DNA from: Neoconidiobolus thromboides FSU 785
Lineage: Eukaryota; Fungi; Entomophthoromycota
Reading direction: 5' to 3'
Length of the DNA: 64,000 bases
Assembly (NCBI GenBank): GCA_025603075.1
Contig: MU626265.1
Span: 157,516 to 221,515 of the forward strand
Shown: positions 2,685 to 43,504 of the stretch, one piece after another
How the letters are laid out: every line of letters starts with the position of its first letter
Numbering within the stretch: position 1 is the first letter of the stretch
Translations under genes and position numbers: made by a program
Notes under the pieces: model-generated
Told to the model about the DNA's origin: nothing
Databases searched by the model: none
Seen by the model: the letters and a program-made list of their open reading frames with translations, nothing else

Positions 2685-3170
2685 TATTTTGACTAAAGAA
2701 AAGAAATTTATTTATAAAACTATTCTTTGATTTAAATAGTTCAATCTTATCTACAAATAAGAATTTACTCAAGATTAATTTATAATATTGATGTAAATTT
2801 ATTATTTTGATTAAAGCTATTTAGTAAAAACAAAGATAAAAGCTTATAAGTTTAAAATTTTATCTATATTTTAGTAAATAATGAATTAAATTGACTCGCA
2901 ATTAAATTATTATCACTAAAAGAAATTAGAGCTATATGAGGCTAGCAAATACCTAAGAAGTATCAACAACTAATATCAACTTTATATTAAGATAAAATTT
3001 AATCATTATTTTTATATTATCTTAGTTGATTACTAATATTTCTATATCGTGTTATACTCATCTTTTATTCAAATTGTTCAATAATAATTGAACTATTATT
3101 TTTCTAGTGAATTTGAAACAAATTTAAGCCATAGCAAAATTTTTTTAGAAAACTACTTTTTATTCTAACA

Positions 3171-4333
3171 ATGCCATTTGGACAAGTAAAACATAAAGAA
3201 TAAGGATAAAGCAAGGATTAAAATAAGTAAGGTAGTAATAGGACCACCAGGATCAGGCAAAACAAGTTATTGTTATGGAGCAGAACAATTTTTCTCGGGT
3301 TTAAAAAGGTAGTTACTACTTATTATCAGTTTCATTTAAACTTTATTCTTAGAAAAACGATTATTATCAATTTAGATCCAGCTAATGAAAATATTCCTTA
3401 TACACCCGCCATTGATATTAATGACTTAATTACAGTACAAGATGTTATGGATGAATTTCAATTGGGACCTAATGGGGGTATGGTTTATTGTATGGAGTAT
3501 TTGGAGAAAAATATAGACTGGTTAATAAATAAACTTACGAAATTTGAAGGTAAATAAACAAATGGAAATTTAAACAATGTTAACTTTATTTAGATTCTTA
3601 TTTTATATTTGATTTTCCTGGACAAGTTGAACTGTATACTCATAATTATTCGGTAAAGAACATATTAGATAAATTACAAAAACTGGACTTTAGAGTAATT
3701 TAAAACGTCAATATTTTAAGATCCTATTTACAATTTTTAGTTGACTGCTGTACATCTAGTAGATGCCCATTACTGTACTGATCCAGTGAAGTATATATCA
3801 GTTTTACTAGTATCACTGAAGACAATGTTGCTGTTAGAGTTGCCTCATGTCAATGTACTTTCAAAGTTAGATCTAATTCAAAGTTACGGAAAATTAGGTA
3901 ATATCAATCAAAGCCAAATATCAAATTAAAACAATTTAAAAATAATAGCCTTTAGGTTAGAATTTTATACAGAAGTTATGGATTTAAGCTATCTTTTAGA
4001 ACAGCTTAACGAAGAGCAGATGGGAACGAAATACCACAAGCTAACAGAAGCGCTTTCCTCTTTAGTTGAAGAGTTCGGGCTAGTCCATTTCCACCCCTTA
4101 ATGGTCGAAGTTGGTTTTTTTCACTATATATTATATTATTAACTCATTTATTTAAGGATAAAAAATCCATGATTTCATTGATGAAAGCCATCGATAAAGC
4201 GAACGGCTATGTTTTTGGAGGCTTGGATGAGGACAACACTTCTTTGTTATTATCGAATATTAAGGTGCTTGATAACACTGAGTTAATAAGCGATATGGAA
4301 CAGATTTATATAAAAGAAAGAGAAGAGTTATAA
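3171..4333 (+). CDS. GPN2: GPN-loop GTPase 2, multi-exon
   Basis: MPFGQ|[15 protein letters not shown]-loop, [47 protein letters not shown]. Confidence 0.92.
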
Positions 4334-8375: not shown

Positions 8376-9466
8376 ATGTCAACTACAAATAGCAACAAAT
8401 TTTTAAAAATCGATATTCATACTCATATACTACCAAAACAATTACCAGACTTATCTCGTAAATATGGTTATGGTTCTTGGGTTTCTTTGGATCACTTTGA
8501 ACCTGTAAGTAGTTTACAGCTATTAAATAATAATATATTAATCTGATTTAGGGTAAAGCAAACATGATGAAGGATGGAAAAAACTTCAGAACCATCGAAT
8601 GTAACTGCTGGTCTTCATCTCAACGTATAAAAGAGTGCAATGATACTGGAGTAGATGTTCAGGTCATTTCTACTGTCCCAGTTATGTTCAACTACTGGGC
8701 AAAACCTCAACACACTTTAGATCTTGCTAAATATTTAAATGATCATGTAGCTCAAACAGTAGCTGAGGATCCTTCTAGATTTATTGGCTTAGGCACTTTA
8801 CCTATGCAAGCTCCGGATCTTGCCATTCAAGAGATGAAACGTTGTGTTAATGAGCTAGGATTACCTGGGGTACAGATAGGCTCTCATATCAATGAATGGA
8901 ATTTAGATGCACCAGAACTGGATCTCTTTTTTAAAGCAGCAGAAGAGCTTGGGTGTGTTATTTTTGTTCATCCTTGGGATATGGAAACAAAGGGGCGAAT
9001 GGAAAAATATTGGTTTCCCTGGCTTATTGGTATGCCTTGTGAAACCACTATTGCCGTTTGCTCCTTAATCTTTGGAGGTGTTTTTGATCGCTATCCTAAA
9101 CTTAAGGTTTGTTTTGCCCATGGAGGCGGATCGTTTTTGGCTACCTTAGGTAGAATCGATCATGGCTTCAATGTAAGACCAGATTTGTGTGCCACACACA
9201 TTAAGAAACCACCTTCTAGCTATTTAAAACAAATCTTTGTTGATTCTTTAGTTCATGATTTAGATGCCTTAAAGTTTATGGTTGGTAAAGTAGGTGTAGA
9301 TAATATTTTATTAGGTTCTGATTATCCATTTCCGCTCGGTGAACATCATCCTGGTAAACTCATTGAGGATGCTTCTGAATTTAGCGATGAGGATAAAGAA
9401 AAAATGTTATCTGGGAATGCATTGAAACTTTTCAACTTAAAACCTGAGAACTATTTGCGCAACTAA
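8376..9466 (+). CDS. ACMSD: 2-amino-3-carboxymuconate-6-semialdehyde decarboxylase (amidohydrolase 2); intron 8505-8551
   Basis: KIDIHTHILP, VQVISTVPVMFNYW, FVHPWDM, WLIGMPCETT, AHGGGSF, LGSDYPFPLGE. Confidence 0.93.
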
Positions 9467-11166: not shown

Positions 11167-13158
11167 ATGATTTACTCTTCATATAACTTAAGTATATTTA
11201 CTGTCAATGCCTATACCAACATTAAAATAACATCAGGTTTTATTATTAGAATTACTAACCAAAAATCAGTTGCCAGTTTTTTAACCAAGTTGAATACCAG
11301 GGTAGAAACTACATTAATTAGTTCAAATTTAAATGGTCCTATTTTTATAGTACAACGTTATTTGAACACAGTATCAGAAAGGAATAATCAGTTAGATCTT
11401 TGTTGTAATAGGGGATCTGAACATGTTAAAGACAGTAACTTTATGAAGAACAGTGAAGAAGCGAATGTAAGAGTTACAATATCAAAAGATGAATATAGAC
11501 AGTCGGAGTCAAATAATTTAGCTCAACAAACACAAAAAAAGATGGAAGAATATAATAGGCTGGGAGATTACAGAGCTTCCAGTGAGTGCTTTGAAACTTT
11601 TATCCAAACCAAAGGAGATAAACAGTACAGGTTTTTTGGTATAGATTTTTTTAATATTGCTCTGACAGCATTTTTGAGAATGAAAATGTATTCAAGACTT
11701 GTAGATTTATATACAAAAATAAAACAAAATAGAGTGAAGCTGGATATATCTACTTATAATATTGTATTAAAGTCATATTTTGAGCAAAGTAAGTGGAATG
11801 AAATCAACGAATTGAAGCAAGACATTATAACTTATGAGCTAAAACCAAATAAAGTTACTTATTTTCTTTATATTCGAATAAACTTAAACCAGAACAATGA
11901 TAAGCAAGCAATGTCGATTTTTAACAACATAAGTCAAGATAAAGATAAACACCCTCTGTCATTTTCAAATTATCATCAAATTATAGTAGACTTATGTGCC
12001 ATGAGAAAAATGAAGTTAGCATTGAAAGTATATGAGACAATAATAGGTAATGGGATAAAACCTACCGAGGATTTTTGTATTACTTTACTACGAGGCTTAT
12101 TTTCAAGCAATCTGCCACTTATTGCAAATCAATTATATAAACAATGGAAAATCAAATATCCACACTTCAAATCAAGTAAGCGAGTTATCAAATGTATTGT
12201 AGAGGGTATGATCATAAACCGAGAGTATAGTCAAGCATTAAATTATTTAAAAGTGTTAAGAAGGAATGGAGAAACAACTAATAAAGATGTGGAAAAGATA
12301 TGGAATCGGTTATTTACGACCCATTTTACTCAAAAGGAGATAGATTTACAAAAAATTAATACTTTAAAAAGATATCTAGCTGATAATTTCAATTTACCAA
12401 AAAGTTGTATGATAATTGATATAGATGTTTTAGTCAAGACTTATTTAATTGCCCCAGAGCAAGATCATAGTAATTCTCAAAAAATGGAAATGAATGGCAA
12501 TCTTCCTTTGGATTCTTTTTTCGAGCATAGAGTAAAGCCTATATTTACTCCAACATTGAGTGTTTTTAACGCTCTAGCACAAACTTTGAGCAAATATAAC
12601 ATGGATGATCTAAATTCGCAACTATTACTATTAGCAGAAAGAGAGCTTGGCTCAATTCCGCTTTCGATATATAATATAATGCTGAAAAAAGCATTCCAGG
12701 TAGGGGATATTAACATTGTTAATACTTTATTAGCCAAACTAGAAGAAGATAAAGTAGAATTCAATACAATGCTATACTCAACAATAATTAATGGCTATTG
12801 TTTCTCAAGTGAACCTAAAAAAGCATTATTAACTTACCGTGATATGCGATTAAAAAATTACCCAAGGTTACTTTATCCAGCTATCAAAGTAATCAAGTTA
12901 AGTAGAAGATTAAAAGAGGTCAACTTTATGTTATGGATTATCAAGGATACCCTCGGTTACTATGGTCATGATTCGATGTCCAGTGATGATAAAAACTGTT
13001 ATAGTTTAGATACTACTTTAAGTGAGACGGAAATTGAATTGTTTATTAGCAAATTAAAAGCATTAAAATCTCCGACTATTGATTTTGTTTTATTGAACTA
13101 TGATAAACTAAAATTAAGGTTAAATGGTGATATTACTAACAATAATAAACTTTATTGA
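11167..13158 (+). CDS. Pentatricopeptide-repeat protein, intronless, probably mitochondrial
   Basis: 663-aa ORF with PPR units such as DISTYNIVLKSY, NKVTYFLYI, SIYNIMLKKAFQVGD, NTMLYSTIINGYCFSSEPKKALLTYRDM. Confidence 0.85.
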   Translation: MIYSSYNLSIFTVNAYTNIKITSGFIIRITNQKSVASFLTKLNTRVETTLISSNLNGPIFIVQRYLNTVSERNNQLDLCCNRGSEHVKDSNFMKNSEEANVRVTISKDEYRQSESNNLAQQTQKKMEEYNRLGDYRASSECFETFIQTKGDKQYRFFGIDFFNIALTAFLRMKMYSRLVDLYTKIKQNRVKLDISTYNIVLKSYFEQSKWNEINELKQDIITYELKPNKVTYFLYIRINLNQNNDKQAMSIFNNISQDKDKHPLSFSNYHQIIVDLCAMRKMKLALKVYETIIGNGIKPTEDFCITLLRGLFSSNLPLIANQLYKQWKIKYPHFKSSKRVIKCIVEGMIINREYSQALNYLKVLRRNGETTNKDVEKIWNRLFTTHFTQKEIDLQKINTLKRYLADNFNLPKSCMIIDIDVLVKTYLIAPEQDHSNSQKMEMNGNLPLDSFFEHRVKPIFTPTLSVFNALAQTLSKYNMDDLNSQLLLLAERELGSIPLSIYNIMLKKAFQVGDINIVNTLLAKLEEDKVEFNTMLYSTIINGYCFSSEPKKALLTYRDMRLKNYPRLLYPAIKVIKLSRRLKEVNFMLWIIKDTLGYYGHDSMSSDDKNCYSLDTTLSETEIELFISKLKALKSPTIDFVLLNYDKLKLRLNGDITNNNKLY

Positions 13159-14388: not shown

Positions 14389-14533
14389 TTTGATTGTAAA
14401 TTTTAAGCCACGAATTTCTGTTAACTGACTAAATAGCAACTTGACTTTTGCTTCTTTCGCTTCCTAATGCAACTTTTTGCACAAAATGTACTGTATTTTT
14501 AAACTTGGCAGTTTTGATAGTTATTTTTTAAAA

Positions 14534-15706
14534 ATGAAAAAATTATATATTTTAACAAGGTTAATAAAAAACAATAGAAGCCTACAGCAATGTATAATAA
14601 AGAATCACAACTATCAAAATATACGTTATGAATCAACAATAGGCACTAAAAAATGGTTAGACAAACTTAAATTTGATGAACCAACCACTTTAGAAGTATA
14701 TAAAAAACCAAAGATAATAATTAATGAAGAGATAGCGTCCATCTTACATCAACACATTTTAAGAAAGGATTTCAACAAGTGTATTGACCTCATTGAGTTA
14801 TACTTATTTCGAACTCATAATTATATCGATTATAATCTTATAAGTTTGGTTCTTAGAGCTATAATCGACCACTTTAAGTTTCAGTATAAGTTTAAAACTT
14901 ATATTAAAGATGAAGCATTTTTACTATTGGGGAGGCTGTATAATAATTTAAGCCAGTTTAAAATCAAACTGGACCGAAATTGTGCAAATTGTTTTATCTA
15001 TGCTAATGTATTAAAATTGGATTTAGATATGGATAAAGTAGAACAGATATATAAAGAAAATGAGGTTGATTACGACATTGTTACTTATACTAACTTGATC
15101 TTAGGTTATGGAAGGATTGGAGACTTTAAAAAAATACGTTCGATTTATAGATATATAAAATTTCAAACACAACTAACAATTAATAATGTTACTTATTCTA
15201 CTATTATTGTTAGCTGTTTGAATAAAAATAAATTGAATTTGGCACTAACCTATTATTATCAAATGTTGGAAGAAGGCGTTAAACCTACAAATCATATTAT
15301 CGGACCTTTGATCATAGCAAATTTAAAATTAAAGCAAGTGGATCAAGCTTTGATGTTATTCAATTCTTTGTTGAATTTAAATATTCAACCTGATCGTCTT
15401 TGTATGGAAAAAATGGTTATTGGTCTAGTAAAAAACCAACATTATGAGGTGAGTTTAAAGTTTTTAGAGCAAGCAGTTCATTATGGCTATTCCCTCAATC
15501 CTAAGTTTTATTTACAATTGATTAGTTGTGTACAAAGAGAAGCAGATGTTTTAGTAACTATTTGGGATTTTTATCTAAACACCACAATTAAACTCAATCA
15601 AGAGGTTTTATTAGCATTCTACAGTGCTTTTAAATTAAATAAGAAGGGGATTGCTGATACTATTCTAGTATCAATTCAAGAGCAATATAAAACTACTGAT
15701 TTATAA
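14534..15706 (+). CDS. Pentatricopeptide-repeat protein, intronless, probably mitochondrial
   Basis: Basic N-terminus; PPR units DIVTYTNLILGYGRIGDFKK, NNVTYSTIIVSCLNKNKLNLALTYYYQMLEEGVKP. Confidence 0.85.
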   Translation: MKKLYILTRLIKNNRSLQQCIIKNHNYQNIRYESTIGTKKWLDKLKFDEPTTLEVYKKPKIIINEEIASILHQHILRKDFNKCIDLIELYLFRTHNYIDYNLISLVLRAIIDHFKFQYKFKTYIKDEAFLLLGRLYNNLSQFKIKLDRNCANCFIYANVLKLDLDMDKVEQIYKENEVDYDIVTYTNLILGYGRIGDFKKIRSIYRYIKFQTQLTINNVTYSTIIVSCLNKNKLNLALTYYYQMLEEGVKPTNHIIGPLIIANLKLKQVDQALMLFNSLLNLNIQPDRLCMEKMVIGLVKNQHYEVSLKFLEQAVHYGYSLNPKFYLQLISCVQREADVLVTIWDFYLNTTIKLNQEVLLAFYSAFKLNKKGIADTILVSIQEQYKTTDL

Positions 15707-27623: not shown

Positions 27624-29600
27624 ATGTCTAAATCTCGTGCTATTGGTATTGATTTAGGTACCACTTACTCATGTGTAGGTGTATGGCAAAATGATCGTTG
27701 TGAAATTATTGCTAACGATCAAGGTAACCGTACTACCCCATCTTATGTTGCTTTCACTGACTCTGAACGTTTAATTGGTGATGCTGCTAAAAATCAAGTC
27801 GCTATGAACCCATACAACACCGTTTTCGATGCTAAACGTCTTATTGGTCGTCGTTTTGATGAACCAGAAGTTCAATCCGATATGAAACATTGGCCATTCA
27901 AAGTTATTGATAAATCAACTAAACCAATTATCCAAGTTGAATATAAAGGTGAAACTAAACAATTCACTCCAGAAGAAATTTCTTCAATGGTCCTCATTAA
28001 AATGAGGGAAACTGCTGAAGCTTATCTTGGTACAACCGTTACTGATGCCGTTGTCACTGTCCCAGCTTACTTCAATGATTCTCAACGTCAAGCTACTAAA
28101 GATGCTGGTGCTATTGCTGGTCTTAATGTTCTCCGTATCATTAACGAACCTACTGCTGCTGCTATTGCTTACGGTCTTGACTCCAAGACCACTGGTGAAA
28201 AGAATGTCCTTATCTTTGATTTAGGAGGTGGTACTTTTGATGTTTCCCTTTTATCTATTGAAGATGGTATCTTTGAAGTTAAAGCTACTGCTGGTGATAC
28301 TCATTTAGGTGGTGAAGATTTTGATAATCGTCTTGTTAATCACTTTATGCAAGAATTCAAGCGTAAAAACAAGAAAGATATCTCTTCAAATGCTCGTGCT
28401 ATGCGTCGTCTCCGTACTGCTTGTGAACGTGCTAAGCGTACTCTTTCTTCTGCTGCTCAAACTTCTATTGAAATTGATTCCCTCTTCGAAGGTATTGATT
28501 TCTATACCTCCATTACCCGTGCTCGTTTCGAAGAACTTTGTCAAGATCTTTTCCGTTCCACTGTTGATCCAGTAGAAAAAGTACTTCGTGACTCCAAGAT
28601 TGATAAATCTGCTGTCAATGAAATTGTACTTGTTGGTGGTTCTACTCGTATTCCAAAGATCCAAAAGCTTGTTTCTGACTATTTCAATGGTAAAGAACCA
28701 AATAAGTCTATTAACCCTGATGAAGCTGTTGCTTATGGTGCCGCTGTCCAAGCTGCTATCTTAACTGGTGATACCTCTGAAAAGACTCAAGATCTTTTAC
28801 TTCTTGATGTTGCTCCACTTTCTCTTGGTATTGAAACTGCTGGTGGTGTCATGACTCCACTTATTAAACGTAATACCACTGTTCCAACCAAGAAATCTGA
28901 AACTTTCTCTACTTATGCTGATAACCAACCTGGTGTATTAATCCAAGTATTCGAAGGTGAACGTGCCCGTACTAAGGATAACAATTTATTAGGTAAATTC
29001 GAATTATCAGGTATCCCACCAGCACCACGTGGTGTTCCACAAATTGAAGTTTCCTTTGATATTGATGCTAATGGTATCTTAAACGTTACTGCTGCTGATA
29101 AATCTACTGGTCGTTCTAATAAGATTACTATTACTAACGATAAAGGTCGTCTTTCTAAAGAAGATATTGAACGTATGGTTGCTGAAGCTGAAAAATATAA
29201 ATCTGAAGATGAAGCTGCTGCTGCCCGTATCTCAGCTAAGAACGGACTTGAATCTTATGCTTATAATTTACGTAATACCCTTAATGATGAAAAGGTTGCT
29301 GGTAAATTAGAGGCTGCTGATAAAGAAAAACTTGAAGCTGCTATTAAAGAAGCCACTGAATGGTTAGATAACTCTCATGAAGCTTCTAAAGAAGAGTATG
29401 AAGAGCGTCAAAAGGAACTTGAAGGTGTAGCTAACCCAATCATGGCTAAGATCTACGCTGCTGGAGGTGCCCCAGGCGCTGAAGGAGGTTTCCCAGGAGG
29501 TTTCCCAGGAGGCGCTCCAGGAGGCGCTCCAGGAGGTTTCCCAGGTGCTCCACCAGCAGGTCCAGGTGCTGATGGACCAACCATTGAAGAAGTTGATTAA
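27624..29600 (+). CDS. HSP70: Cytosolic Hsp70 (SSA type), intronless
   Basis: [28 protein letters not shown] repeats, C-terminal EEVD. Confidence 0.99.
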
Positions 29601-35778: not shown

Positions 35779-36785
35779 ATCAGCTAGTATGGGTTATTTT
35801 GATTAGAATATAAATTCTTTAAAGGAGATTAAACTAACTAGTAAATTAATTAACATATAATCCTAACCTTATTTAGTCATTAATTACATTGAATGATCGG
35901 TGAGAATAATCAAACCAAATTTTTGGCTAATTTATGGTTTTAGTCTACATCCACCAAAAGTTAAACTCCAATTCTAAGTATTGATACTTTAGGTGTTAAC
36001 TAATCCATCATGTGATTAATTTGATATTTTTAGTTTTAAATTTAAATTCAAAAAATCAAAGTTGGAATTTAGTTTAACTTGTTTGAAAGATTTACTATGT
36101 TGCTTTTTTTTCTATAACATTTCTTAATAATATTTTCAACTAGTTAGATTTAAAAAATCGATGATAAAATGAAATTCAGAGAACTCTCTTTAAATAAATA
36201 ATTATTATCGTAGTAATATCTATGTATTTGTTAAACTTATAAATAAAATTTAAAAAATTTTCTTCAAATTTTTCTGTAAAGCAATATCTTACTAATTTTA
36301 AAATAGCCTTAATCTGTAACTTAATATTATTCAAAACTGCAACATAATTGTTAAAATAGCTTAGAAGTTTCGTTTACTTAAGTTAAATTGATAAATAATA
36401 TAGAGATTTATTGAAGATTGAATTTAGATTCCAAAATCAAAACTTTATATAATTATTACACAAAGGACTATAAAACAGTTGCTTCAGTTTATCGATACAT
36501 GCCGTAGGTCTTATTTTCTAAATTGAGTTTTTTTTAAATATTACATAAATGCTATAAAAGCTATTTAATATCTATTTACTTATTTTCTAACTTTAGTTAA
36601 TTATAAATGTTAGAAAATAAGTAAGCTTTGAGCAGGGTTTTATTTATGTACTAATTGTGAATAATTAGAACTGTTAAACCTTATCATGATGTATGTGTTT
36701 AATTTAACTTGTCATAAAATCCAATAATCTACAATACTATTAAAAGATAAATAATTTGAATAGTAAAAAAATAGTTTTATTATAT

Positions 36786-36882
36786 GGGGGTGTTTTTCTT
36801 GGTTTCATCATTTTTTATACTTCTAAACATTATTTGAGTGGAAAGTTTATTAGTACAACTCTTAAACAGAAAATAGATCCCT
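36786..36882 (-). mobile_element. MITE copy 4 (left half of inverted dimer)
   Basis: ATAT|GGGGGTG...GATCCCT|ATAT; the right ATAT is shared with copy 5. Confidence 0.85.
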
Positions 36883-36886
36883 ATAT

Positions 36887-36983
36887 GAGGATGAATTTTT
36901 CTGTTTAGGAATTTTACTACAATCTTTCTACTCAAATAGCGCTTAAAAAATGGAAAAATAATGAAGCTAAAAAAAACAGTTCC
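36887..36983 (+). mobile_element. MITE copy 5 (right half of inverted dimer)
   Basis: ATAT|GAGGATG...CAGTTCC|ATAT. Confidence 0.9.
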
Positions 36984-37204
36984 ATATTGTGGTTCTATTA
37001 GTATAGAAAACTAAAATATTTTGTTAGTAAAAATTGGTATGGTATATAAAGCAGATGTAATAGCAGCGAGATAGTAAGGAGGCATTAAAAAGGAAGCAGA
37101 CAGGAGGTTGTCTAGAAAGTGTTTTAAATAAAGTAATATTAAACTTTGATAAACGATTTGACTTTCCTTACTTATCTTTTCAAGTTAAACTAATTTTATT
37201 ATAT

Positions 37205-37300
37205 GGGGTGTTTTTTTATGTTTAAGAATTTTACTAATAAATTTCCGCTCAAATAGTGCTTAAAGATGGAAAAAGTAATGAAGGCAAAAAAACATACCCA
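37205..37300 (+). mobile_element. MITE copy 6
   Basis: ATAT|GGGGTG...CATACCCC|ATGT. Confidence 0.88.
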
Positions 37301-37464
37301 TGTTTAGACTAAAAACTAATTTGTTTATATATAAAAAGTAAAAGTTAATATGAGCATTCATGTAGAAGTTTGAAAATTTTATTGAATGTTTATGATCATA
37401 AATATGCAATAATAATAATAATAGTTTTGTTATTTAAATATTTATTTGTAATCTTTTTAATAGA

Positions 37465-38022
37465 TTAAATAATAGCAGCATTATTATGGCTATTAACATT
37501 GGAATGGTTACTATTTACATCTTTCTTATGAACATTGTCAACAAATACAGCAGCTTCTTTATTACGGTCAAATTCATTAGCATTGAAATTGTTAGCATTA
37601 GCATTAAAAGCATTATTACTAATTACAGTTGGAAAGCCAAAAGAACCAAACCCATTATTAAACCCACCATAACCACCAAGTCCATAACCTGGATAAAAAG
37701 AGTTAAAACCACGTCTGACCAAAGGAACACTACTTGAAATGGAGGTGTCAATTTCAGCTGGAAAATCTAAAGAAGCTAAACTAGGGGTTAAGGTATTAAT
37801 CGAATTAATTCCATTAAATCCAAAATTTCCATTTAAACCAAAGGTGGGGGTGATAGAATGAAATTGCTGGAAGTTATTACTATTGAAAAATTCATTAGAG
37901 CCAAAATTCAATGGTAAAGTATTGAAGCTTCGTTTAGCTAAGTGGACATCACTTGAGGTTGGGAGTGAAGTAATAGTAGCAGTTAAAACTAATATACTAG
38001 CGTTTAATGTAAATCTGTTCAT
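37465..38022 (-). CDS. Secreted N/F/G-rich precursor A (185 aa; signal peptide, KR and RR sites), intronless, unknown function
   Basis: MNRFTLNASILVLTATITS|LPTSSDVHLAKR|...VPLVRR|GFNSFYPGYGLGGYGG...; TATA-like element ~35-40 nt upstream of the ATG. Confidence 0.85.
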   Translation of the reverse strand: MNRFTLNASILVLTATITSLPTSSDVHLAKRSFNTLPLNFGSNEFFNSNNFQQFHSITPTFGLNGNFGFNGINSINTLTPSLASLDFPAEIDTSISSSVPLVRRGFNSFYPGYGLGGYGGFNNGFGSFGFPTVISNNAFNANANNFNANEFDRNKEAAVFVDNVHKKDVNSNHSNVNSHNNAAII

Positions 38023-38799
38023 TTTTTTGATAGTTAATCCCAGTTTTACTTGGCTCTTTATAGGTAGTCTAATCGTCTTAATTTATCTTTATTTACAATA
38101 CAAAGATATAAATTTGATAAATAAATATTAATTAATATCCTTTATTAAATAAAATCTTAATTTGAACAATTTCATTGAACTTTTTTGTTGGTAAATTAAA
38201 ATTATCTGATTAATAATAAATACTAACTTCTATCATAGCACCTAATAATCAATCTGATTAATCATACATAATTTATTGTAATATTAGTCGAGTGACAGTT
38301 GGAGTCAAGTATTGCACAAGATTAAACCCTAGGGTGAACACGAAAGCACTAGACTTAAATCGGTGGATATAAGAAAGATCCACTAGGAGTTGGATATTAT
38401 GTTTTAAAATATTATTTCTAAGAGATGAAGTTTTGTAGTTTTATTGAGGTAAATAAAGTATATTTTACAGTAGCGCCATAACAAATAATTGTACACAAAA
38501 ATATCTTTTTTGTCTCAATGTTTTGTTATTAATTTTTCTTTATTTTACATTGCATAAGAAATGAAATAAGTAACGAACTAATATATTTATGTTGTATAAT
38601 TCATGTGCAATAGTGTACTCCCTTAAAAGGGAAAATCAACTATGAGACCTTTTAATCAGATAAGTACTAAAGTTGGGACAATTTCATTAATTGTTGTCCG
38701 TTCTCTTAAAAAATAGTTTTATCTCATACCCAGATTAAAAACTAACTTATTTTTATTAATAAAAGTTAATGTAAGGGTTAACATTTAAATCTAAAATAT

Positions 38800-38896
38800 G
38801 AGGATGAATTTTTCTGTTTAGGAATTTTACTACAATCTTTCTACTCAAATAGCGCTTAAAAAATGGAAAAACAATGAAGCTAAAAAAAACAGTCCC
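38800..38896 (+). mobile_element. MITE copy 7 (2 differences from copy 5)
   Basis: ATAT|GAGGATG...CAGTCCC|ATAT. Confidence 0.9.
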
Positions 38897-38975
38897 ATAT
38901 GTTTAATGCTTATAATTATAAAATAATAATAATAGTTTTGATATTTAAATATTTATTTGTAATCTTTTTAATAGA

Positions 38976-39314
38976 TTAAATAATAGCAGCATTATTATGG
39001 CTATTAACATTGGAATGGTTACTATTTACATCTTTCTTGTGAACATTGTCAACAAATACAGCAGCTTCTTTATTACGGTCAAATTCATTAGCATTGAAAT
39101 TGTTAGCATTAGCATTAAAAGCATTATTACTAATTACAGTTGGAAAGCCAAAAGAACCAAACCCACTATTAAACCCACCATAACCACCAAGTCCATAACC
39201 TGGATAAAAAGAGTTAAAACCACGTCTGGCTAAATAACTATTGCTTGATGCTGGAAGTGAAGAAATAGTAGCAGTGAAAGCTAAAATAATGGTTTTTAAT
39301 AAAAATTGATTCAT
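38976..39314 (-). CDS. Secreted N/F/G-rich precursor B (112 aa), paralog of A
   Basis: MNQFLLKTIILAFTATISS|LPASSNSYLARR|GFNSFYPG...; the last 81 aa match A except for one N>S change. Confidence 0.85.
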   Translation of the reverse strand: MNQFLLKTIILAFTATISSLPASSNSYLARRGFNSFYPGYGLGGYGGFNSGFGSFGFPTVISNNAFNANANNFNANEFDRNKEAAVFVDNVHKKDVNSNHSNVNSHNNAAII

Positions 39315-39628: not shown

Positions 39629-40553
39629 TTGTATTTAAATTTATAAGATAAATTCAAACAAATGATAAAAATGAATAATTTATCAATACAAAAATGTGAT
39701 TCATTTTGTCTAAACTAAATAATGTGTTATATTATAATACATAAAGCGTTCTAACATGATAACTTTTTTTAAAACGACACTAAATAATGCTCCCTTATCA
39801 ATTTAAACGTAATCTTTGTTTTTATAAGTCGTAGTTTTATAGAGTAAAGGCAAACATGTACTAGGATTATAACAGTTATATGATTACCTCTCACTTAAAA
39901 GATTTCATATTAAAAAATATATATTTCATTTAAATTAAACGATAATAATTGTTAGCTTTCAATTTCAATCAATTTTTAATCAATAAGAATCAATAGGAAT
40001 AGAAAAACCACCAATCAATGTAACCAAATAATTTCTAAATCAAGATAAAAACGAAATTTTAGTCACCTAAATAATTTAAGTCAACTAAAAAAATGCTATA
40101 AAAAATGCTATAAAAATGCTTTAAAGTGCAATTTGCTTGAGCTTACATTTCTATAATTTATTGGTTTCTTTAAAAATAATTAATAATCAATTTAAACTCT
40201 ATCAATATATTATTATTTATTTTAATATAGCCATGTAATGAATTATTCAGCCAAACTTCTCTCTTATGGATTTGAACCTAATTACTCTGATAATGAGCTT
40301 TTTGAAGGTGAGTATAGTGACTGTGTTGCAACCACAACTGTGACAATAGTGATTATGAGTTTGGAGAAATTATTGATGTTTGTATTCAGGAAGATCATGG
40401 AGAGTACAATGTTATAATGTTGTGGAATTTAATAATGATAACTATATGTTAGCGTATAGTTATAGTTATACATTATTAAAAAGACTCACTAATGATTTTA
40501 ATAAATCCACTCCAAAGCGTAAGTAACCTCCAAGCTTAGTAAATTTACTATAT

Positions 40554-40650
40554 GGGGATGTTTTTTTTTGTTTAACACTTTTACTGATGACTTTCCCACT
40601 CAAATAGCGCTTAAAAAATAAAAAAAGTGATAAATCAAAAGAATGTCATC
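40554..40650 (+). mobile_element. MITE copy 9 (left half of inverted dimer)
   Basis: ATAT|GGGGATG...GTCATC|ATAT; the right ATAT is shared with copy 10. Confidence 0.85.
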
Positions 40651-40654
40651 ATAT

Positions 40655-40751
40655 GGGGTTGTTTTTTTTAGCTTCATTATTTTTTCATTTTTTAAGCGCT
40701 ATTTAACTGGAAAGATTGTATTAAAATTCTTAAGCAAAAAAACATATCCCC
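40655..40751 (-). mobile_element. MITE copy 10 (right half of inverted dimer)
   Basis: ATAT|GGGGTTG...TATCCCC|ATAT. Confidence 0.85.
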
Positions 40752-43504
40752 ATATGGATTTGAATATAAATAATAATGCTTGAAATAATCATAATGTTTT
40801 TTAGGTTGGGTACATCTTACTGAGAACCTGCGGTCTCCTTTGGGTAATATAAGTTAAGCAACTTCTTTATTTTATTTATGAGTCTTATTTTTGTTTAGTT
40901 TAATAGTTTATAAAATACTACTTAATTGTTGCTATTAAGTAAATACTTTTCTACTACCCTTTTTATAAAACCTTAAACCCCAAAGAGTACGTATCTTTAC
41001 TAAATTAAGTCAATTATTTTGAGTAGGACTGATAAACATGTTGAAGAGAAAATTAATACCTTTAGAGTTATTGGCAAGGTATTTGATCCTATATAAGTAA
41101 TTACTTCTCCAAGGAATCTTACATTTTATATGAAGGTGAGAGGCGAATCTTTCTACTTTTAGTTTATCCTTCAAGAAAGTTCAAGAAAGTTTGTAAATAT
41201 ACTATAATATAGATTCAAGAAAGTAGGTTTCAAAGGGAAGTTCCAAAGATAAGAAGATTTAGAGACAAAATTTTTAGAAAGTGGTAAGATCAATATAATC
41301 AAATAATTCAATAAAAGCGAGACGCCAAAAGATTAATATGAATCTGCATTCTAAGAACTTCTATAATAGACTTCTACCTATTGAGAGATATCAATGATAT
41401 TCTGATGAGACTTCAGGAATGAATTTTGCTAATTAAGTTTAAGTGAGAAAGGTCTTGTGAGGGATTCACTATAGAAATGCTTCTTGTTTTGTGCCCGGGT
41501 TGAGAATAATTATCACGAAATAAAGTTGAACTTGTAGTGACTATTCTTATTTAATAAAAAAACTATAAATAGTATCATTTGTATTTTTATTAACAAAATC
41601 TGATATTGTCATTCAAGTTAATTAAACTAAAAATTTATACTAAAAGTTAATAAATACAAGATCTATTAAAAATAGTTATAAAATTAATTAAAATCAGTTG
41701 AATTGTAAAATTCAACAATAAAGTAAGATTTCTAAACAAGTTAATATTTAAAAGTATTTAATAAAATTAATAAAAATTATATTAATATATATTATTGAAA
41801 TTTAATGAAAAAGCTAATCACTTATAAGATTCCAAAAGTAAATTTGGAATCCTATATAATTCAATTTGGGCAAAAAATAATTTAAACTTTTAAAAAAACC
41901 TTTAGAAAATAAATTAATTTAATAATATTTATTTCTGTTTCAACAGCTAATTAATAATATTTTTAATGCTTATATAGTATAATTAATGGACAAAAATTAA
42001 GATCAATAATATTTTATTACTAATTTTATTGAATATTAAATGAATTCAAAGGATATAATAATTGAATTGACCACTTTAAAATTAACAATTTATTTAATAT
42101 TAAATTTGTCCTTATTTTTTTTAAAATTTACACAAAAATCATTATTATACTTTATTTATTGAACGAGTTAATATTTTATAAACATTTTATATAATACTAA
42201 ATAACAACATAAAATAATGATATCACTTATATTGAATACCCAGAAAACAACTAACAATCTCTAAGTGCTTTTTCAACGAACAGTATTTAAGAGGAATGAG
42301 TAAAAAGGAATGGTAGCTTACAGATTAGGAGCTTTTTAGAATAATGAGTTACATTTTAGTTAACATTTAAAACTACTAAAAACTTCATAATTCAATTATT
42401 ATTTCTTCTATACCTTTTCTATTATTAATTTTTTCAAACTATAACACTATCTCTATAATCAAATTTATTCAATAATCGACTATTAATAATTACTGCTTTT
42501 GTTTGATTTTAAATACAGTTTATTCTCTAAATATATCAACTAGCTTTCAATTAAATTTAGTATATATCCATGTACCGAAATTACAACTTACTATTAATAA
42601 AATACTTTTAAAAATAATTATTTAGCCAAAATATATCATTATATTAAAATTATTATTTATTTCTAGTTTGTTTTATATGAAAAAAATGGATTTAGAATAA
42701 ATTAATAGTTTAATCATATAACAGTATCACGTTATTTTTGTAATTACTTTGATAGCTCAATAGTTCAACAGTTTAATAGTTTAATAGTTTAATTGTCTAA
42801 TTTTATTATTTTTCCATTATTCAAATTCAATCTAAATAAGTATTATTGTTAATAGGTTAAATTCAAGGCTAAAAGGTAGTTTTAAATTATATTAATTAAA
42901 CGTTATTTATTAATAAATTTGTACTTAAAAGCAATTACTTGCTATCTTCAAGTAAGTTAAAAAATAACATTGAATAATACAATTAATAACAACATAAATA
43001 AAACTCTTACACCCGATTTTCTTCCTTATACTAATAATTCGAAACCCTTAATATTCAACAAATAAACTTTTAATTTGTGGTTAAAAATTTCAATTTTTTA
43101 GTGACTTATACTAAATTTAGTAAATTCTTGTGATTCTTCTGATTAGCAAACCTTAATATGGATAGTATGGTACTAGACCTAAATTTATTCTAATGAAAAT
43201 ATAAAGGAGCTTGGATTGAAATAAAAAGTTTAACCTTTCTTTGAAGATTTCATTTTTTATTAAAATTTAGGCTTAATAATTAGATCTTTTATTACTATTT
43301 AATTGTTATACAATTCAAGAAAATAATGCTATTTGGCTAATTAATATCACTTAATAATTATACAATTCAATAATCATTCCAACTATAACAAAAGAGTATA
43401 TAAACAGTCATAAATTTAACAATTGACAATAAAACAATAAACTTAGATAACTACTATCCCCAAACGCACTTAACATTTATTTAAAACAGCAACTCAAATT
43501 CAAT

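Follow-up and report, generated by a model that had tools for sequence, protein, structure and literature searches.

A conserved family of candidate Kex2-type secreted precursors in Neoconidiobolus thromboides and other Zoopagomycota

Two small tandem genes, here called gene A and gene B, occupy positions 37465-39314 of the window, the whole stretch of 64,000 nucleotides (nt) that was analyzed, on contig C8 of the 24.6-Mb assembly of the entomophthoralean fungus Neoconidiobolus thromboides FSU 785. Each encodes a protein with a hydrophobic, signal-like N-terminus, a short pro-segment closed by a pair of basic residues and an Asn-rich C-terminal peptide. Both belong to a conserved protein family with the layout of precursors processed by kexin (Kex2). 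The overall explanation that fits best, and that can be held with moderate confidence, is a family of secreted pre-pro-proteins whose peptides would be released by kexin to play a structural role in the fungal wall or at its surface.

The two genes and their shared DNA block

Gene A and gene B are intron-less open reading frames (ORFs) on the minus strand, intact from ATG to stop and spaced 953 nt apart. Their parts are as follows (aa, amino acids).

37465..38022, minus strand: gene A, complete coding sequence including the stop, a two-module precursor of 185 aa (ORF list and sequence; identical 185-aa protein P0012 in NCBI nr)
37930..38022, minus strand: gene A residues 1-31, hydrophobic signal-like N-terminus and short pro-segment ending HLAKR (maximum Kyte-Doolittle mean over 9 residues 2.28; Leu at P4)
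37711..37929, minus strand: gene A module 1, 73 aa, SFNTLP...PLVRR, rich in Asn, Phe and Ser, with the second dibasic site at its end (composition)
37468..37710, minus strand: gene A 81-aa C-terminal peptide, a Gly/aromatic low-complexity part followed by a conserved 58-aa Asn-rich core ending AAII (composition, family alignments and substitution rates)
38976..39314, minus strand: gene B, complete coding sequence including the stop, a single-module precursor of 112 aa (ORF list; identical to P0001 in NCBI nr)
39222..39314, minus strand: gene B residues 1-31, signal-like N-terminus and pro-segment ending YLARR (maximum Kyte-Doolittle mean 2.48; DNA 72% identical to the gene A counterpart)
38979..39221, minus strand: gene B 81-aa C-terminal peptide, which differs from its gene A counterpart at one residue (sequence comparison)
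37411..37710 versus 38922-39221, unstranded: near-identical block with 3 mismatches in 300 nt, spanning the part that encodes the peptide plus 54 nt of 3′ flank (DNA comparison)

A first-pass annotation of this DNA had reported two tandem ORFs, gene A with two modules and gene B with one, with pro-segments ending xLx(K/R)R and proteins free of Cys and Trp, and all of this is borne out. It had also described a shared 81-aa peptide with 19 Asn and 10 Phe. That count is exact for the peptide of gene A, which has 10 Gly as well; the gene B copy has 18 Asn through a single N-to-S change, together with 10 Phe and 10 Gly. Asn thus accounts for 22-23% of the peptides predicted to be released, in which Gly and aromatic residues are also abundant.

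The identity between the two genes runs from the 3′ flank through the codons of the RR pair and then collapses: identity is only 72% in the parts encoding signal and pro-segment, and the promoters cannot be aligned. On the conserved core, the rate of nonsynonymous change (dN) between gene A and gene B is 0 and that of synonymous change (dS) is 0.03. The shared 300-nt block is read from these comparisons as a recent gene conversion or partial duplication.

Several copies of a repeat of about 105 nt, resembling a miniature inverted-repeat transposable element (MITE), surround the genes, at 36883-36987, 37200-37304, 38796-38900 and 40550-40755. Each gene has one such copy 76-160 nt downstream, and the copies at 36883-36987 and 38796-38900 are 98% identical. 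Inverted dimers of the repeat lie at 36782-36987 and 40550-40755. Between the two genes, a slightly GC-richer patch at 38260-38440 is single-copy in the genome and matches no Rfam family or tRNA; Rfam and tRNA scans of the whole 34-44 kb part of the window likewise returned no match.

Paralogs and relatives in Zoopagomycota

Six-frame searches of the assembly recover at least 12 family genes as well as decayed copies, arranged in tandem clusters on contigs C8, C80, C115, C82 and C476. The close paralogs present in NCBI are annotated as hypothetical proteins of N. thromboides FSU 785. Two subfamilies can be distinguished. Subfamily 1 is Asn-rich and Cys-poor (a single Cys in one member). Besides the two window genes, it takes in a 13-kb cluster of five intact genes on C80 and a partial gene on C476. 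Cys and Trp are abundant in subfamily 2, which has three genes on C115 and two to three on C82, so that a composition free of both residues belongs to gene A and gene B alone. In members of subfamily 2, 2-5 copies of a Pro/Gln-rich pro unit of about 16 aa (14-17 aa) ending AQSGIHRR come before the domain. Three such paralogs, identified from their sequence, are placed as follows.

L013:1294-1761 (G000:C115:59012-59479): Cys/Trp-rich paralog with repeated HRR units
L012:1345-1782: Cys/Trp-rich paralog with repeated HRR units
L014:1483-1998: Cys/Trp-rich paralog with repeated HRR units

A further variant on C82 (L024:1501-1785; G000:C82, about 3149-3433) retains the signal and pro region of the family, and after HRR a 42-aa Cys/Gly/His repeat (CGGHGG...) replaces the Asn-rich domain. 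A Pfam search with this variant gave no match; from its composition, a metal-binding or antimicrobial-type peptide is possible. Two decayed copies with in-frame TAA stops lie at C80:22227-22400 and C80:83051-83218 (L010, L015), and the second of these comes after an ORF resembling module 1 of gene A. Weak paralogous matches to this module are confined to a two-module gene on C80 and to a decayed C80 copy. The large ORFs beside the C80 and C115 clusters encode a cyclin, a GH72 enzyme, a kinase and a pyrophosphatase. The GH72 protein, a β-1,3-glucanosyltransferase with an X8 domain (L046:2793-4364; G000:C115:26792-28363), is encoded 1.3 kb from the member C115c, and the proximity of this wall enzyme is a weak hint at most of a wall role.

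Across paralogs, pairwise dN/dS on the C-terminal core (56-58 aa) is 0.05-0.29 while dS is 0.6-2, which places the amino-acid sequence of the core under strong purifying selection. Gene A and gene B are real genes, as follows from this selection, from the exact record of both proteins in NCBI nr and from homologues in other genera.

These homologues came to light through searches of different reach. A first word search yielded N. thromboides proteins only. A profile built from N. thromboides sequences alone, run against 1.84 billion representatives, returned seven proteins, among them CONCODRAFT_167088 of Conidiobolus coronatus and three metagenome or Logan proteins, and missed Coemansia; the Coemansia members came up once a mixed alignment served as the query of a word search. 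When the last 51 residues of one Coemansia protein were used as query, 54 proteins were identified, all from Coemansia spp. or Linderina macrospora. All are annotated as hypothetical, with several per genome and some bearing adjacent locus tags, as in the tandem pair GGI17_003787/003788 of Coemansia. Two Logan proteins, P0028 and P0029, were set aside as spurious Gly/Tyr-rich matches that lack the C-terminal domain.

Alignment of the N. thromboides set with the Coemansia set by hhalign gives a probability of 98.1% (E 9e-14) and extends from the Gly-rich part as far as the final residue. By this comparison, the family spans two subphyla, Entomophthoromycotina and Kickxellomycotina. The homologue search recommended by the first-pass annotation has thus found relatives in Conidiobolus, Coemansia and Linderina. 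Members with a named source all come from Zoopagomycota (these three genera and Neoconidiobolus), a distribution that says nothing about other fungi, since the genome collections scanned were prokaryotic. Scans of metagenome contigs gave no family match, and a Pfam search with both window proteins and their relatives assigned no family. A sequence search of the PDB with the family profile returned a lone chance match to an antibody (E 0.23), and the ESM Atlas held no usable match for gene B or a Coemansia member.

The members share a common order of parts: a signal-like N-terminus, a pro-segment, the motif L-x-(K/R)-R, a Gly/aromatic stretch and a conserved Asn-rich domain. In Coemansia and subfamily 2, the pro-segment shows a P-x-Q-P... 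pattern. The Gly/aromatic stretch, of very variable length, is built of GGY, GGF or GGW; CGG is a frequent addition in Coemansia and subfamily 2. The domain that follows spans about 47-58 aa and presents its motifs in the order G-F/Y-x-P, N-E/D-F-D-R-N and A-A-V-F-x-D (A-N-F-N-E-N in Coemansia), leading to an Asn-rich tail and a hydrophobic C-terminus (AII, IIA or VIA). In alignments, the Gly/aromatic part varies through insertions and deletions while the core keeps a fixed length. Conservation in the C-terminal half is position-specific and extends to the charged motifs (EFDRN/EFDRNKE, AAVFxD and HKKD).

Predicted Kex2-type processing and class membership

All members possess a hydrophobic N-terminal stretch, with a 9-residue Kyte-Doolittle maximum of 2.1-3.2. 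Gene A has two predicted dibasic sites, HLAKR and PLVRR, and gene B has one, YLARR. Across the family, a (K/R)R pair stands directly before the Gly-rich start in 54 of the 62 scored domains; 38 of these have Leu at P4, and most of the rest have a different hydrophobic residue there. Kex2 is described as preferring Arg at P1, Lys or Arg at P2 and Leu or an aliphatic residue at P4 (PMC8528282), and the match of the family motif to this preference supports the Kex2-precursor reading. The position of the site is constant across subphyla, while the pro-sequence around it varies.

Precursors with two modules and a dibasic site before each occur independently in three lineages: Linderina, the metagenome protein P0009 and gene A. 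Linderina P0031 has the predicted sites ...LARR|Q... and ...FRKR|Q..., and P0009 has ...LTKR|G... and ...NLKR|C.... A gene for the protease itself is present in the N. thromboides genome: it encodes a kexin in which Peptidase_S8 and P_proprotein domains are recognized; there is also a second P-domain match. The first-pass claim of secreted Kex2-type precursors therefore gains strong comparative support from the recurrent sites, the two-domain relatives, the HRR repeats and the kexin gene, and a Kex2-type pro-peptide architecture of gene A and gene B is judged highly probable from these sequence comparisons.

Two classes of fungal precursor provide the closest known counterparts. Gene A and gene B appear best described as Kex2-processed pro-proteins (K2PPs), within a family that also appears to hold members of the type of repeat proteins processed by Kex2 (KEPs). 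K2PPs such as SnTox3, ToxA and SIX1/4/6 (PMC8528282) have a signal peptide, a short disordered pro-segment, L-x-K/R-R and a single mature C-terminal product. This layout, that of a class and not of a homologous family, is, as predicted from sequence, an exact fit for gene B and most Coemansia members. Sequence and fold are unrelated: the mature part is a folded, Cys-stabilized effector in the known K2PPs, whereas here it is low-complexity or disordered. Furthermore, the present family also occurs in saprotrophs, and its cleavage is a prediction from sequence.

By the definition of Le Marquer et al. (2019, PMC6339444), a KEP has three or more similar motifs between KR, RR or KK sites, and these motifs make up 15% of the protein or more. 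Gene B, with one site and one module, and gene A, with two sites and two unlike modules, fall outside this definition, while the paralogs C115b and C115c, both beyond the window, fall within it with 3-5 short repeats between HRR sites. Judging from their repeats, the Cys/Trp-rich C115 paralogs are thus true precursors of the KEP type, from which short peptides would be freed along with the domain. The general likeness to KEPs such as MF-alpha, Ustilago Rep1 and Candida Ece1 (PMC6339444, PMC7329392) lies in secreted precursors cut at KR/RR into several peptides, a layout approached by the C115 paralogs and by the two-domain Linderina and metagenome relatives. The conserved unit differs, being a domain of 65-106 aa here and a short core peptide in KEPs.

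The suggestion of the first-pass annotation that the locus represents a new biological system goes too far, since secreted peptides processed by Kex2 form a class that is both known and common, and KEPs are reported to be densest in Zoopagomycota (PMC7329392). What the analysis newly defines is a conserved domain family, so far unnamed, with its processing signature. No paper was found on the proteins of gene A or gene B, and the FDRN motif is absent from the text supplements of the KEP survey, which did not include N. thromboides.

A fungal precursor for a ribosomally made, post-translationally modified peptide (RiPP) of the dikaritin or ustiloxin type was also considered. It was rejected because no tailoring enzymes lie nearby: among ORFs of at least 70 aa beside the clusters and the window genes, none encodes DUF3328/UstYa, a tyrosinase or a methyltransferase.

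The remainder of the window is AT-rich (about 22-36% GC) and eukaryotic in character. The neighbors of gene A and gene B encode an Hsp70 (27624-29600), pentatricopeptide repeat (PPR) proteins, and synaptojanin-type and PABA-synthase-type exons. Two PPR proteins lie close to each other, at 11167-13158 and 14477-15706, and an amidohydrolase is encoded at 8564-9466.

Proposed role of the released peptides

In the proposed pathway, the pre-pro-protein would enter the endoplasmic reticulum, and kexin in the Golgi would then cut after the dibasic sites. Gene B would release one near-neutral 81-aa peptide, while gene A would release the same 81-aa peptide together with an Asn/Phe/Ser-rich peptide of 71-73 aa. 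Once outside the cell, the released peptide would act as an intrinsically disordered, self-associating component of the wall or surface matrix, of the glycine-loop or glycine-rich-protein type. This extracellular role in wall, surface or matrix is the favored one, albeit tentatively.

The two-part design, with a variable Gly/aromatic part and a fixed core, resembles by analogy that of secreted glycine-rich structural proteins. Loricrin, a glycine-loop protein, offers a comparison for the Gly/aromatic stretch. Plant cell-wall glycine-rich proteins (GRPs, PF07172) are secreted, with or without Cys, and contain GGY, GGF and GGW repeats of variable length; unlike the present family, they have neither a conserved Asn-rich C-terminal domain nor a pro-peptide site. 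The relative P0009 matches the GRP profile below threshold (24.8 bits, against a Pfam cut-off of 30), and neither gene A nor gene B matches it. AlphaFold2 yields no confident structure for the peptides, with predicted local distance difference test (pLDDT) scores of 47 and 49 from alignments of 12 and 30 sequences, and predicts no β structure. Such low scores are compatible with disorder, or with folding only upon assembly or binding.

Several observations weigh against this explanation. The codon usage of the genes is unlike that of the highly expressed Hsp70 gene; codon bias is uninformative here as a proxy for expression, and the very high expression expected of a bulk structural protein is not indicated. 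A specific binding partner would account for the position-specific conservation of the charged motifs no less well than a bulk material. Finally, the C. coronatus-type members P0007 and P0010 lack a dibasic site between signal peptide and domain, so that processing, as far as these sequences tell, is not universal in the family.

The alternatives differ in how they use the same features. The first-pass annotation envisaged an amyloid coat or adhesive, in which the released peptides form cross-β fibrils on hyphae or conidia and replace hydrophobins as the Rep1 repellents do. Rep1 of Ustilago maydis, a pre-pro-protein of the Kex2 type, is a precedent of this kind: on aerial hyphae its peptides assemble into amphipathic amyloid fibrils (PMC3133707). 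It is the proposed functional analogue for surface assembly. The abundance of Asn, Gly and aromatic residues in peptides that have no confident monomer fold would suit such fibrils, and the pro-segment could block premature assembly. Hydrophobins (PF01185, PF06766) are themselves small secreted fungal proteins in multigene families with a proposed analogous surface role, and no hydrophobin Pfam match was found in the N. thromboides genome in a search run without a positive control. Gene A and gene B nevertheless lack Cys, and hence the eight-Cys pattern of hydrophobins, have no Pfam match and share no homology with them. Rep1 is likewise unrelated in sequence and differs in composition, and amyloid is demonstrated for Rep1 while here it is proposed on compositional grounds. 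Alternation of the N-x-N type is not enriched over composition-matched shuffles in the window peptides (P 0.13-0.21; 0.03 for a Coemansia member). Codon usage does not point to very high expression. The absence of predicted β structure also argues against fibrils, as do the conserved charged motifs (EFDRNKE, HKKD) and the strong position-specific constraint on the core, since a sequence driven purely by composition would not be expected to behave like this core, conserved by position at a dN/dS of 0.05-0.29. An amyloid coat is considered unlikely. A broader version, in which the Gly/aromatic segment and the Asn-rich domain of a Zoopagomycota-specific surface material would polymerize, possibly as cross-β, on hyphae or forcibly discharged conidia, with the pro-segment inhibiting assembly during secretion, is also regarded as a minor prospect.

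Soluble bioactive peptides (antimicrobial, toxic or signaling), which would attach to a specific target or receptor through the conserved C-terminal domain, rank after the wall or surface role and are considered rather doubtful. Pheromones, toxins and effectors are common products of Kex2-processed precursors (PMC6339444, PMC8528282), and the low dN/dS of a position-specifically conserved core would fit a binding function. Multi-copy tandem arrays with Cys-rich and Gly/His/Cys-rich variants, and the typical KEP layout of the C115 paralogs, point the same way. On the other hand, acidic to neutral pI values (4.1-6.3, about 6.3 for gene B) prevail among the predicted mature peptides and only a few are basic, which disfavors a classical cationic antimicrobial peptide. 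Their length of 65-106 aa and their long variable Gly/aromatic stretch are unlike known fungal pheromones, and tailoring enzymes are missing nearby. The family is found both in saprotrophs and in an insect pathogen, and a host- or insect-specific effector or toxin is unlikely because saprotrophic Kickxellales have the same family. It is far less probable that the dibasic motifs go unused and that the whole proteins, pro-segment included, are secreted or wall-bound GRPs. This possibility draws on the C. coronatus-type members and on the fact that cleavage is read from motifs; it is opposed by the retention of the site, with the Leu at P4 preferred by Kex2, amid variable pro-sequence across subphyla, by the dibasic site before every domain in two-domain relatives, and by the gene-conversion block, which stops immediately upstream of the site. 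In an AT-rich, low-complexity genome with decayed, stop-bearing copies on C80, the ORFs might be suspected to be open by chance or to be dead gene copies. This reading is effectively refuted by a dN/dS far below 1 at saturating dS and by homologues in other genera; both frames, moreover, are intact.

The favored wall or surface role bears on a group of fungi that has been poorly studied, and on the source of the surface properties of zoopagomycotan hyphae and of their sticky, forcibly discharged spores. Zoopagomycota are not known to have hydrophobins. A family common to an aphid pathogen and to saprotrophic Kickxellales, with no Pfam family and no named protein, supplies a candidate surface, matrix or bioactive peptide. 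It also adds to the Kex2-processed fungal peptides a conserved case in which a whole domain, 65-106 aa long, is the unit predicted to be processed. If the idea of a self-assembling surface material is true, these peptides would form a coat, water-repellent or adhesive, such as hydrophobins provide in Dikarya.

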